DNA of 61,802 bases, the filler included, from Choristocarpus tenellus KU-1152 (lineage: Eukaryota; Protista; Phaeophyceae), in NCBI GenBank assembly GCA_964200185.2. It is 13 parts of 13 records of this genome, joined end to end, with 100 filler letters (N's around TTAATTAATTAA, not from the genome) between each part and the next. Parts side by side here need not be neighbours in the genome. Positions count along the whole stretch, not along the records: positions 49,854 to 53,852 come from CAXNAD020016735.1; 12 more parts are not named here. One strand, 5' to 3'. Positions within the stretch are counted from its first letter, which is position 1. Each line of letters starts with the position of its first letter. Below, piece after piece: positions 49,754 to 53,952 of this stretch. Position numbers and translations under genes: made by a program. A model generated the notes under the pieces. That model was not told the origin of the DNA, did no database searches, and saw nothing but the letters and a program-made list of their open reading frames with translations.

Positions 49754-50889
49754 NNNNNNNNNNNNNNNNNNNNNNNNNNNNNNNNNNNNNNNNNNNNTTA
49801 ATTAATTAANNNNNNNNNNNNNNNNNNNNNNNNNNNNNNNNNNNNNNNNNNNNCCCCCCCTCTAGACTGGTATGGACACACCATAGTGTTGAGAATGACA
49901 TTACGGACATGACATCCTATATTGTACAGTCAAGGTCTAAAAAATAAACATTGTTGTGAAGAACTAACAGGGTGATTAAAATAGCATTGGAATAGTCAAG
50001 ACCATGGTGGTTGAATGATGGTATGACAACAACAGATGCAATTCTTAATACTGCAGTGATGAAGTGTGGGTGAACAAGGGGTGTTACAACCCATCCACCA
50101 ATTTTCGTAACATTGGGCAAGGATCTAATTAATACAGGACATGGTCTAGTTGTACACACCAAACAAAAGGTTACTGTGAGGGGGTGAAGCCCTGTTCGAG
50201 CAGCCTACCGGTTGATGGGAACAACAACGCCCTCAATACACAGGTATCAACATTAACAAACAGAAAAACCATAAACAAGGAAAGTCAGGATCAGCTAGCT
50301 CAGAGTAAGTTATGAAGGATACCCCTTGCCCCCTCTTCACAGTAAAACATGATGGCATGCAGAAATAAGAGAATTAGCCTTTTTGAACGAAATAGAGCTG
50401 GAGAAATATCTCAAACGTATCACTGCTTGGAAGCAACTCAATTAAACTAATGCTTGCATTTCTTACACAGCCTTCCTGCACCTGTGCGATAGCATGAGGT
50501 TGATCCATCTAGTGATGCCAAAATCAACTCTTAGTGTTCACAAATGTCACTGGGACCAAAATGGGAGTCTCTCTGACTGAATATGTCACAACTTGACTTG
50601 CAGGTCACAATGACATTCGTCTTCTGAGTTGTTTTTTTACACCTTTGAGACCGCCTGAAATAAAAACTCAAGAGGGAAGCAGAAATGAAGGATGTGTGAT
50701 GTATGGTGATCGCAGAGGGTTTCCAACCAGGGAGGGAGGTAACAGTAAAATTCATAGAAAAGGCTGGCCAGTACAAGATCCTTTTAAAACATGATGTGAC
50801 ACCAAATTATTCCTTTCCTACCTCAATACTCAAGACAGAATAAATGACTTAAACATAGAACCATTGATATCTGCCCAAAAATCACACAC

Positions 50890-53644
50890 CTTAGAAATCT
50901 TGGCATAAAGTCCCTTGAGGTCTGCCCCAGCTTCATAGGGCTTCACCTCGAGCACAATCTGTGACCTGTGGCCGCCATAAATAGATGTTCACCATGGATA
51001 GACATGATACCAACACTCACATATTCTACCAACAGTGTTTAAACAATACTTCATGCCATCATTCATTGGTTTCTTTTAAAGTCATACCATTCCATGAACT
51101 CTACCACTTGGACATAAATCAATTTCCTGGAAGGATCCCATCGCTCCATAAACTCACACTAAGGACTACAACTCCTTTCTGAGGAAGGGGTAACAGATTT
51201 TGGAATCCTATTTACTACTCATACACTTATCCACTGGAAGTGTAGCTCCTTCCTCTGCCATCACAAAGAAAGCCAATGACACATGAAACACTGCAATGCA
51301 TAACATGCACCTACAGTGTATGTTTTGTGCAGGATTTGTAAGGGTTTGGGGGCAGATTGTCAACGTCAATAGGGAAACAATCTCTGGAAGTAATCTTCAG
51401 TTGCCCTCAGGCAATAATTGTACATATTATGTAGCTCTACAAATCACTCAGCTCCTCGGCCTTGAGGAAATACACAGGCAATACATACCTCCCCTGCTTG
51501 TGGTTGGGTTCTTAAGGTGTGGTACAAGGATTTTAATAATAATAATTATAATAATTGCATTATCTTATGAATATTATTAACTGGCTCAGCTTGGGCAACA
51601 TGTATCTCTATACTAAAAGCAGGGATATATCAAACCTCGGAGAGGAACTTAAAAAAAATGTCTGACACCCTTACTGCACTTTGCTGCAGATTAGAATAGA
51701 ACCTAGCCACACACATGTCCATATGGTATATGTTCCTCTTTTTTTTTTCTTCTCGAATACAAAGGTACAGACCACTCTTGAACAAGACTCTACCAGACAC
51801 ACCCTCTTGACCCTCTCAACCCTGTTGTTTCAATAAACCATCAAAAAATCAATATCAACATCAATGTCCACAAGATATTTGCACAGAGCTAAGGCGTGAG
51901 GTTTATCTATCTCAGCATTGCAAATCTCTCACCTGAAAAAAAGTAGAAAGTGGGGTCAAATATATCACATTTTAAGATGGAAACACATCTAAGCTATGCC
52001 TGACAAGACTATCTCGGTTGTCTATACCTGGCAACTTTCTTCTTAGCATCCTTGGCTGCCTTAGCTGCTGACATAACCTCTGCACGACTCGGACCCTTCT
52101 TTTCCTCCTTCTCCTCATCTCCAAAGAGGTCATCCATATCATCGTTGTCCTCCCCCTTCTTCTCCTCCACCCCAACAATTGCCACCTTAGCCACCTTCTT
52201 TTCCTTGGCTCCTTTCTTCTTCCCTGTTGCATCTCCTGCACCTGCACCTGCTCTTGCCCCTGCCCCTGCCCCTGTCCAGCTTGCACGCACCGCTGGTGAA
52301 AATATCCCCACAGTGTTGAGCCACCCTTGTACCCCAGGACATGTGGTTGAGGACAGCACCCCCATAGGAATGCTTCGTGCTGTCTCATACACAGCAGCAT
52401 CGTCTGGGCCTGGCACAGAGCCGCATAGGAACCGGGACCCCTTCAGCTTCGCCTGCAGGGCACAGGAAAAATTTGTTAGCACAGATAACACAGATGAGGC
52501 GATGAATGACTTCTGATGAGCTAAGAGATTAAGAAGAAATAGGGAAAAGGCCTAGCTGTCAACAAGTGTATCATCCAACAGTTACAAACTAGAGGTGCAA
52601 TGAATAAAAAACAAAAGGTTACTGAGGTGATGAATATAATACAGAGTTTAAAACTTGTAAAATAAAACTCTCCCTTTTTGGTTGTGAGAATATTGACTGA
52701 GGGGGGGGGGGAGGATAGCGAGTCAATACTAAACTATGAAAAATTGGACGGAAGAAGGAGATAGCAGCAGGGGTGTGTGGAAAGTCTAGCCCCCATCACA
52801 AAACACTGTATAATGTCTAAACACAATCAAGCAACTGCTGTTTATCAAATGGGTACTATTGACCAGCATAACAGCACACCATCATATGCATGTAAGTAAT
52901 AAATTACTACAAAAAACAGGTGACACAGGTTATCAGATGCATACAAACCAGAGCATTTCACCAAAAGGGAACACAAAATAAAATATTACCCATAAGATAT
53001 TTGTAGATACCCTTACAACTTACATGAAATCGATGATCACTACTGTGGATAGCAGAGTCATAAAGACCAAAATCGTTCCATACTGATAAACAAATGCTGG
53101 ACAAGTGGAGAATAGTAGTGAAAGCATACCCCCATTCCATATTCAATATCCATTCTTTTACCACACATCAATCTTCCATTACCATCCCCCCCATACCTCT
53201 ACCGCGAATGCAATACCCTAAGAGACAAGTGACATCATCAATAATCACATTCAATACACATCCAAAAATTCCCTTACAACGGCTGCCCACTGCCCACCAC
53301 ATAACAGCAAATCAAAAAGCTAAGACAAGGAGGCAGGCCGCCATGATCCACCTACTCAAAGTTGGAAAACTACTTCCCCCTCTCTCCCCCACCAGTGTTG
53401 ACCACCTCTATCCCTCATCCTAGACACACTGTACCTCCAATTTCTGAAGGCCTGCTGCTGTGCCAAGGTCAACTCCATCCAGTGACGTACAGTCCTTGAC
53501 TACAAATGCCTTCGAGACAGGAGACCCTTTCCCTGCCCCCGAAGCAGTGGGTGTTGCCACAGGAGTTGTTGCTTGTCGTGCGGAGGCTACAGAGTCTTCT
53601 GATGGCTTCATAGCAGGAAACAGGAGCACTTCCTTTATGTTGTT
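50890..53644 (-). CDS. KARS: Lysyl-tRNA synthetase C-terminus fused to an elongation factor 1-beta (EF1B)-like module (partial, spliced)
   Basis: Exon 53435-53644 begins NNIKEVLLFPAMKP (class II LysRS C-terminal signature) and runs without a stop to VDLGTAAGLQKLE. Exon 52028-52452: AKLKGSRFLCGSVPGPDDAAVY..GVQGWLNTV..DDMDDLFGDEE..AKKKVAR. Exon 50890-50965: SQIVLEVKPYEAGADLKGLYAKISK (start of the EF1 GNE domain). All GT..AG and in phase. Confidence 0.88.
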
Positions 53645-53952
53645 CTTTACAGGCAAATCACAAGGAAGAAAATAACAAAGGGGATCAAGTTAGGAAAGTT
53701 CAAGAGGTGTCCTGGTGAGGTAAGGGCAAGTCAGCAAGGAGTACAGAGGTTGGTGTATATGTGTGACGAAAGGGGGGGGGGGGGGGGGGGGAAAAGAGAG
53801 AAAAAAGGGGGAAATATTCGGTGGATTTTTTTTATAAAAATTGTTTCCCCCANNNNNNNNNNNNNNNNNNNNNNNNNNNNNNNNNNNNNNNNNNNNTTAA
53901 TTAATTAANNNNNNNNNNNNNNNNNNNNNNNNNNNNNNNNNNNNNNNNNNNN

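Follow-up and report, generated by a model that had tools for sequence, protein, structure and literature searches.

The stretch of DNA analyzed here (the window; 61,802 nucleotides, filler included) comes from the brown alga Choristocarpus tenellus KU-1152 (GCA_964200185.2), and its positions 49854-53852 (CAXNAD020016735.1) very probably hold the 3′ half, truncated on either side, of an orthologue of a nuclear gene in which lysyl-tRNA synthetase (LysRS) is fused to the exchange factor eEF1B, with docking and recycling as the mechanism of its product. The genomic sequence of the piece is confined to these positions, and the gene lies on the minus strand. The gene occurs in brown algae and their close relatives (Xanthophyceae and Chrysoparadoxophyceae), in which its product reads as one polypeptide of ~840-860 residues. 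This polypeptide comprises a complete class IIb LysRS (OB fold and catalytic domain), the motif FPAMKP, a flexible linker and a complete eEF1B-alpha-type protein, whose parts follow one another in the order GST-C-like N-domain, acidic DDxDxLFG region, Lys-rich helix and guanine nucleotide exchange (GNE) domain. Judged from the coding sequences, the fusion is real and conserved, and the junction falls within a single exon. A sequence-only reading of the window had proposed an in-frame fusion of LysRS with an EF1B-like exchange factor. The proposal is borne out, and the decisive evidence comes from orthologues, in the form of four orthologous loci (L001-L004) and full-length proteins.

Three in-phase GT-AG exons were delineated on the minus strand by translation and splice signals, namely exon A (53644-53435), exon B (52452-52028) and exon C (50965-50890). 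The phases agree, being 0 between exons A and B, and the codon AG|G that is split between exons B and C encodes Arg. The G+C content is 50-56% in the exons versus 39-41% in the introns. Exon A, the junction exon, comprises 70 codons with phase 0 at both ends; it is preceded by the acceptor ...CCTGTAAAG| with a pyrimidine-rich tract ahead of it, and is followed by the donor |GTACAG. The exon opens with the conserved C-terminal tail NNIKEVLLFPAMKP (53644-53603), which closes the catalytic domain and marks membership of LysRS-II, continues through a 40-residue linker rich in Ser, Ala, Thr and Pro (53602-53483), and ends in the first helix of the eEF1B-type N-domain, LDGVDLGTAAGLQKLE (53482-53435). 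No stop codon occurs anywhere in it. The sequence-only reading had placed the tail, the linker and the start of the eEF1B helix in this exon, and all three are found there on the minus strand.

Exon B consists of 141 codons and 2 nt, and is bordered by the acceptor ...CCCTGCAG| and the donor |GTATAG. Its translation gives the rest of the GST-C-like eEF1B N-domain (59 residues ending ...FSPAVRASW; 52452-52276), a Gly/Ala/Lys low-complexity stretch (52275-52150), the acidic motif DNDDMDDLFGDEEKEE, which contains DDMDDLFG (52149-52102), and the Lys-rich helix KKGPSRAEVMSAAKAAKDAKKKVA (52101-52030), before the first 2 nt of the split Arg codon (52029-52028). The GST-C-like segment, the acidic DDMDDLFG and the Lys-rich helix had already been read in the exons that follow the junction, and translation confirms them. 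The features that mark eEF1B membership are present, both the GST-C-like N-domain (53482-53435 together with 52452-52276), which is ~50% identical to fused orthologues, and the acidic DDxDLFG region followed by the Lys-rich helix. Exon C (1 nt and 25 codons; acceptor ...GCCACAG|, donor |GTGTGT with its GT at 50889-50888) reads (R)SQIVLEVKPYEAGADLKGLYAKISK, the first strand and helix of the EF1_GNE domain. The exchange-domain exon of the earlier reading is present in this form, but it starts at 50965 with a split codon and contributes only the first 25 GNE residues to the piece. We also note that the codon at 50938-50936 in exon C replaces the near-invariant Trp of VKPW(D/E) with Tyr (VKPYE); the Trp is present in the brown-algal, Phaeothamnion, Chrysoparadoxa and Tribonema sequences inspected over this motif.

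The exons were searched singly, with one query per exon. The 11 best matches of exon A in a phmmer search against all PDB sequences were lysine-tRNA ligases without exception. Residues 1-14 of the exon are identical to residues 562-575 of human LysRS, a segment immediately ahead of its C-terminus. Fourteen residues cannot by themselves show that a whole synthetase is attached. Over its whole length, exon A is 53% identical to the Discosporangium exon. Exon B retrieved 25 relatives at E<=0.001 (best E=3e-24) from 1.84 billion representative proteins, and is 45-52% identical to the matching part of P0170, P0165, P0157, P0162, P0181 and the partial Discosporangium protein P0001. Ranked by identity of the exons, Discosporangium comes first at 52-57% (exon B, with the linker recognisably alike), the other brown algae give 45-49%, Chrysoparadoxa 47% and Tribonema 40-41%, an order that points to a source among the brown algae or their near relatives. 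Exon C alone matched positions 2-27 of the Pfam EF1_GNE profile with E=0.12, below the threshold set by the gathering score of 20.8 bits, and its identity to the corresponding exon of brown-algal eEF1B, whether fused or stand-alone, is 67-82%. Pfam searches with exons A and B alone returned only chance-level matches (FAP, Bindin), the Pfam EF-1_beta_acid model gave no report for the acidic stretch in the piece, and the phmmer search of the PDB with exon B alone was uninformative, its acidic and Lys-rich stretch matching eEF1-delta (2mvm) weakly at E=2.1. The module is identifiable only by way of relatives and profiles.

Orthologues supply both the LysRS catalytic exons and the rest of the GNE domain, which the piece lacks. 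The best match of exon B, P0001, is an unnamed protein of Discosporangium mesarthrocarpum that starts MFLSDKNNIKEVLLFPAMKP and proceeds through the same linker, N-domain and acidic motif to a complete exchange domain (EF1_GNE E=1e-28). The upstream exons that were expected to encode the LysRS catalytic domain are seen in the orthologues: the contigs of L002-L004 carry, besides the homologue of exon B, tRNA-synt_2 open reading frames (ORFs) upstream on the same strand, and in L001 (Discosporangium), where the contig also ends soon upstream, the preceding LysRS exon was found by direct translation. In L003, the stop-free frames form the whole collinear series from the end of the OB fold through the stop codon. 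The end of the OB fold is followed by ...TRYRQRYLDL, the catalytic exons (...FRNEGIDLTHNPEFT..., ...CNAYTELN...) and the junction exon, after which come the homologues of exons B and C and two more GNE exons that end ...VQSVDMTTMNRL (C-terminal ...MNRL) and a stop codon. L001-L003 have both of these downstream GNE exons, and L004 has the first.

The layout of the junction exon, AG|NNIKEV...KLE|GT, is identical across five genomes, namely the piece and L001-L004; the intron before it occupies the identical position in L001-L004, and the boundaries of exon C are the same there as well. An alternative in which LysRS and eEF1B are two adjacent genes, misread as one through read-through or through merging of gene models, is extremely improbable. 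It could appeal to the public brown-algal gene models P0001, P0157, P0263 and P0264, which are partial, cover only the eEF1B half or a fraction of the fusion, and betray the uncertainty of annotation pipelines at this locus. In all five genomes, however, the LysRS tail and the first eEF1B helix share one exon, with neither a stop codon nor an in-frame Met between them. Unbroken ORFs extend over both halves in the environmental sequences P0056 and P0059, many diatom and oomycete proteins likewise have an uninterrupted ORF into the appended domain, and a complete transcript ORF is available from Tribonema, as described below. The claim of the sequence-only reading that the junction lies inside a single exon holds.

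Full-length products were found by a length-ladder search. The annotated fusions of 835-858 amino acids include P0170 of Ectocarpus sp. 6 (851), P0165 of Pylaiella littoralis (858), P0162 of Cladosiphon okamuranus (846; plus Nemacystus) and P0181 of Chrysoparadoxa australica (835); the model of the Ascophyllum fusion is N-truncated, with 730 amino acids. All of these fusions match tRNA-synt_2 (PF00152) at ~1e-85 to 1e-92 and EF1_GNE (PF00736) at ~1e-25 to 1e-29, and tRNA_anti-codon (PF01336) is above threshold in all fusions but the truncated Ascophyllum model. P0056 and P0059 combine PF00152 and PF00736 in single ORFs. P0178 of Tribonema gayanum is a Trinity transcript with a complete ORF of 839 amino acids, running from Met1 of LysRS to the C-terminus of the GNE domain; it too carries PF01336, PF00152 (~1e-90) and PF00736 (~1e-25), and it clusters at >=90% identity with a Tribonema minus protein of the same length, KAG5186932.1, which is named 'Lysyl-tRNA ligase'. 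P0178 provides transcript-level support for the continuous reading frame in a relative of the source alga. A search with Ectocarpus residues 600-851 returned 5 proteins, was dominated by low-complexity words and missed Tribonema; it is no taxonomic survey.

The copy in the piece might, alternatively, be a truncated duplicate or pseudogene, that is, a stray 3′ fragment holding the LysRS tail exon and some eEF1B exons. Such a fragment would fit a 4-kb contig that leaves 208 nt ahead of exon A and 1036 nt past exon C and shows no catalytic exon and none of the last GNE exons; it would also fit the VKPW motif reading VKPY. Nevertheless, the three exons are open and in phase, their canonical splice sites lie exactly at the orthologous positions, their G+C content is still raised relative to the AT-rich introns, and the N-domain keeps its conserved positions (P, D, F, R and W columns of alignment A1). 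Because introns here are ~1 kb long, neighbouring exons are expected to be missing when the edges are 0.2 and 1.0 kb away. A pseudogene is consequently most unlikely, and the reading as the 3′ half of a fusion gene is retained. The rest of the GNE domain was sought in 49854-50889, where none of six candidate frames gave a Pfam match and the Discosporangium protein had no tblastn match; the two GNE exons still missing, known from the orthologues, are therefore placed beyond the contig edge, as are the LysRS catalytic exons on the other side.

Structural comparison relates the appended module to eEF1B-alpha. The profile of the appended N-domain (A1) aligns with that of the stand-alone eEF1B N-domain (A2) in hhalign at a probability of 98.9% and E=2.8e-17. 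The AF2 model of the Discosporangium N-domain (pLDDT 90.9) has structural matches among GST-C-type folds only. Its best VIA-align match is 5dqs_D, the human eEF1B-alpha N-domain, with Z 8.2 and a root-mean-square deviation (rmsd) of 2.0 Å over 70 residues at 27% identity; this match is tied within one Z unit with the GST-like domains of Arc1p, AIMP3 and GluRS, and the Foldseek E-values for the N-domain folded alone are weak (0.14 to 0.8). In the AF2 model of the 256-residue tail (pLDDT 79.5), the low-complexity middle is disordered, and Foldseek with the whole model matched the GNE domain only. The GNE model resembles yeast eEF1B-alpha bound to eEF1A (1f60_B) with TM 0.95 and rmsd 0.9 Å at 44% identity.

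Turning to catalytic residues, the orthologues keep the Phe of (A/G)FG(I/V)KKL, which aligns with the Phe (F163) of yeast GFGIKKL; the piece itself does not reach the F163 and K205 positions. Yeast K205, located by means of the K205A chain 2b7b_B, aligns with the Arg of ...MNRL in the brown-algal fused copies. The same Arg is found in most stand-alone brown-algal eEF1B sequences, so the substitution would be a lineage trait rather than a defect of the fusion; for the same reason, we rejected the Lys-to-Arg change as the mark of a dead exchange domain. Nearly all retrieved brown-algal eEF1B sequences end in ...MNRL, both the stand-alone P0026-P0043 and the fused P0001, P0157, P0162, P0165 and P0170, with the exception of the Ascophyllum copy P0043, which keeps ...MNKI.

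Selection on the fused copies was estimated from the ratio of nonsynonymous to synonymous substitution rates (dN/dS) among L002, L003 and L004. The ratio is 0.01-0.03 for the GNE exons, 0.11-0.18 for the junction exon and 0.14-0.34 for exon B; as dS is ~1 or more in those comparisons, the figures are rough. They point to strong purifying selection on the GNE exons of the fusion.

The main rival explanation concerns function. It holds that the eEF1B module only docks or scaffolds, its GST-C-like domain entering into eEF1B-gamma or into an Arc1p/AIMP-like multisynthetase complex, and that the GNE domain does not exchange nucleotide. Several observations lend themselves to this explanation. Most stramenopile LysRS (diatoms, Triparma, oomycetes, Platysulcus) retain the N-domain alone, several of these short forms give weak Arc1p_N_like Pfam matches, one of them at threshold, and the structural comparison ties Arc1p, AIMP3 and GluRS with eEF1B-alpha to <=1 Z unit. 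The equivalent of K205 is Arg, and one Tribonema isoform, which diverges after residue 699, is without the GNE domain. On the other hand, the fused GNE exons are held more tightly than the N-domain exon, by the ratios given above, and the predicted GNE fold can be superposed on that of catalytic yeast eEF1B-alpha. The Lys-to-Arg change, moreover, occurs in most stand-alone eEF1B proteins of these algae, which must be active. Taken together, a role in docking only is unlikely.

The isoforms of Tribonema gayanum deserve closer description. Isoforms i1 (P0178) and i2 (P0262) are identical through residue 699 and differ beyond it; the shared part comprises LysRS, the N-domain of eEF1B and some of the linker. 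Isoform i2, of 743 amino acids, is without the acidic region and the GNE domain, and resembles the short architecture of diatoms and oomycetes. It could arise by alternative splicing or from a retained intron.

In the preferred explanation, a fusion with a docking and recycling mechanism, the argument proceeds from the known properties of the parts. LysRS is a dimer, and the GNE domain releases GDP from eEF1A (PDB 1f60, 2b7b). The structure 5dqs, the best match of the N-domain, was solved as a complex of the human eEF1B-alpha N-domain with the GST-like domain of eEF1B-gamma; the N-domain of the fusion therefore probably binds the GST-like domain of eEF1B-gamma likewise. From these properties we infer that the fusion would anchor a LysRS dimer at the eEF1B complex and renew eEF1A-GTP. 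Docking would go through the N-domain, with the GST-like domain of eEF1B-gamma as its partner, and the GNE domain would swap GDP for GTP on eEF1A beside the site at which Lys-tRNA(Lys) is released. The charged Lys-tRNA(Lys) could then be passed straight to eEF1A-GTP, with local recycling of eEF1A, and the fusion would represent the covalent counterpart of the non-covalent ValRS-eEF1H of animals.

Four points weigh against this explanation. The piece itself is without a LysRS catalytic exon and has only 25 GNE residues, and for its full architecture it depends on extrapolation from orthologues with 40-57% identity. Docking on eEF1B-gamma, nucleotide exchange and channelling are each inferred. 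The yeast Lys K205, which is inserted into the nucleotide site of eEF1A, corresponds to Arg in the aligned brown-algal fusions. Lastly, Tribonema i2 stops short of the acidic region and the GNE domain, and some of the protein may be made without an exchange domain.

A more ambitious form of the mechanism makes LysRS of brown algae and their relatives a stoichiometric, covalent exchange subunit of eEF1B, with two active GNE domains per dimer and direct transfer of Lys-tRNA to newly reloaded eEF1A. In addition, gene conversion would keep the fused GNE exons like the stand-alone eEF1B genes, and an isoform switch would let transcripts alternate between a version that includes the exchange domain and one that only docks, as in diatoms and oomycetes. 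We regard this combination as tentative and rather doubtful.

The gene-conversion part bears on the history of the gene. Brown algae also keep a canonical stand-alone eEF1B of ~232 amino acids and a short form of ~183 amino acids, so the fusion would be an additional exchange-factor gene and not the sole one. In the short eEF1B (P0027, P0028, P0033 and P0034; ~183 amino acids), the N-terminus MATCD.SFDEMA.ALSY.SLG... replaces the GST-C-like domain, and the Scytosiphon model P0026 (367 amino acids) has this short-form N-terminal motif twice. In a tree of the GNE domain (95 columns, with several long branches), the fused copies fall into more than one clade, and the starred branches force at least 5 changes. 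Several fused copies group with stand-alone copies of their own lineage, as in Cladosiphon, and the tree places P0056 and P0059 inside a stand-alone environmental clade. This pattern suggests gene conversion or repeated exchange via the shared N-domain, between which 95 columns cannot choose. Repeated fusion or chimeric gene models are hinted at as other options.

A shorter architecture is widespread in stramenopiles. Dozens of stramenopile LysRS proteins continue past FPAMKP into a homologous N-domain and then stop, with a total of ~650-680 amino acids. They come from diatoms, the bolidophyte Triparma, many oomycetes and Platysulcus, MMETSP transcripts among them, and give weak Arc1p_N_like or GST_C Pfam matches, one at threshold and the others below it. 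The short proteins share with the fusion the same LysRS, the position of the linker after FPAMKP and the homologous appended domain (alignment A1), but differ in ending right after the N-domain, without the acidic region and the GNE domain. In several lineages, some diatoms and Pythium among them, loss of eEF1B-alpha has been tied to EFL taking the place of eEF1A (PMC3938643). As a candidate correlation, the LysRS extension may have lost its GNE part along with the change to EFL; Phytophthora, with stand-alone eEF1B genes but a LysRS that lacks the GNE domain, speaks against a simple link.

The remaining features of the piece are non-coding or of low complexity. The 3′ end of the intron before the junction exon (53645-53852, minus strand) shows a polypyrimidine tract and an AG acceptor directly 5′ of NNIKEV. 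The intron between exons A and B (52453-53434, minus strand; GT...AG) has 982 nt and 40% G+C, that between exons B and C (50966-52027, minus strand; GT...AG) has 1062 nt and 39% G+C, and the 5′ part of the next intron (49854-50889, minus strand), of at least 1036 nt, begins with a GT donor and contains no GNE-like frame. At 52235-52274, 6.7 copies of the hexamer CCTGCC (plus strand) encode (Gly-Ala)n between the N-domain and the acidic motif, a stretch whose length and composition vary widely among species. No other gene is apparent in the piece, which has no tRNA and whose longest plus-strand ORF is merely antisense to exon B. A run of 20 G at 53772-53791 near the right contig end and a run of C at 49854-49860 at the left end look like artefacts of sequencing or assembly at the ends rather than biology.

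The interest of the gene lies in what a covalent coupling offers. The idea of aminoacyl-tRNA channelling has so far come mainly from non-covalent complexes that are hard to dissect, e.g., ValRS-eEF1H of animals. The fusion, as read here, is a natural case of a synthetase and a catalytic eEF1A exchange domain on one polypeptide. The arrangement is conserved in brown algae, in xanthophytes and in Chrysoparadoxa, and is flanked, in evolutionary terms, by lineages with the docking domain only. It would make a clean experimental system, in which one recombinant protein serves for charging, GDP release and hand-over, with the LysRS forms minus the GNE domain and the stand-alone eEF1B paralogues of the same cell as natural comparators. 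LysRS would also join the synthetases with GST-like assembly domains, which bears on the building of multisynthetase and eEF1 complexes outside animals and fungi.

As for earlier descriptions, public sets already contain such fusion proteins under the names 'unnamed protein product' or 'Lysine--tRNA ligase'. The sole fusion mentioned in a survey of eEF1B-alpha across eukaryotes is that of eEF1B with a kinase (PMC3938643). No description of a LysRS-eEF1B fusion was found in the full-text literature; subscription journals are outside this coverage, and an earlier report is possible.

Comparison with known systems begins with the parts. The fused module has the same order of parts as eEF1B-alpha (yeast EFB1, human EEF1B2) and its paralogues eEF1B-beta/delta. 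In contrast to free eEF1B-alpha of ~220 residues, it forms the C-terminal extension of a full LysRS, and it further differs in the Arg at the K205 position in brown algae and, in the piece, in the Tyr that takes the place of the VKPW Trp. LysRS of Entamoeba histolytica (PDB 4up7, 777 amino acids), like the fusion, extends well past the FP(A/T)M(K/R)P tail; its extension is presumably an EMAPII-like tRNA-binding/cytokine domain, unrelated to eEF1B.

The helical GST-C-like fold of the N-domain recurs in the GST-domain synthetases and cofactors (MetRS, GluRS/EPRS, CysRS, ValRS, Arc1p, AIMP2 and AIMP3), and VIA-align gives Z 7.4-8.1 to the domains of Arc1p, AIMP3, GluRS and EPRS. The domain table of AARS Online lists GST domains for CysRS, GluRS, MetRS and ValRS only, LysRS not being included (PMC11580382), and unlike the fusion, none of the listed synthetases has an exchange-factor domain. 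The nearest functional parallel is ValRS-eEF1H of animals, which has been discussed with regard to transfer of aminoacyl-tRNA from the synthetase to eEF1A (PMC4394549). In both systems a synthetase is physically coupled to the eEF1B exchange complex via GST-like domains. The coupling of ValRS is non-covalent, by way of an N-terminal eEF1B-gamma-like GST domain that binds eEF1B-delta, whereas the fusion involves LysRS, a C-terminal appendage and an included catalytic exchange domain. The gene in Choristocarpus is one more member of this LysRS-eEF1B family, akin both to the synthetases with appended assembly domains and to the known coupling of a synthetase with eEF1B.

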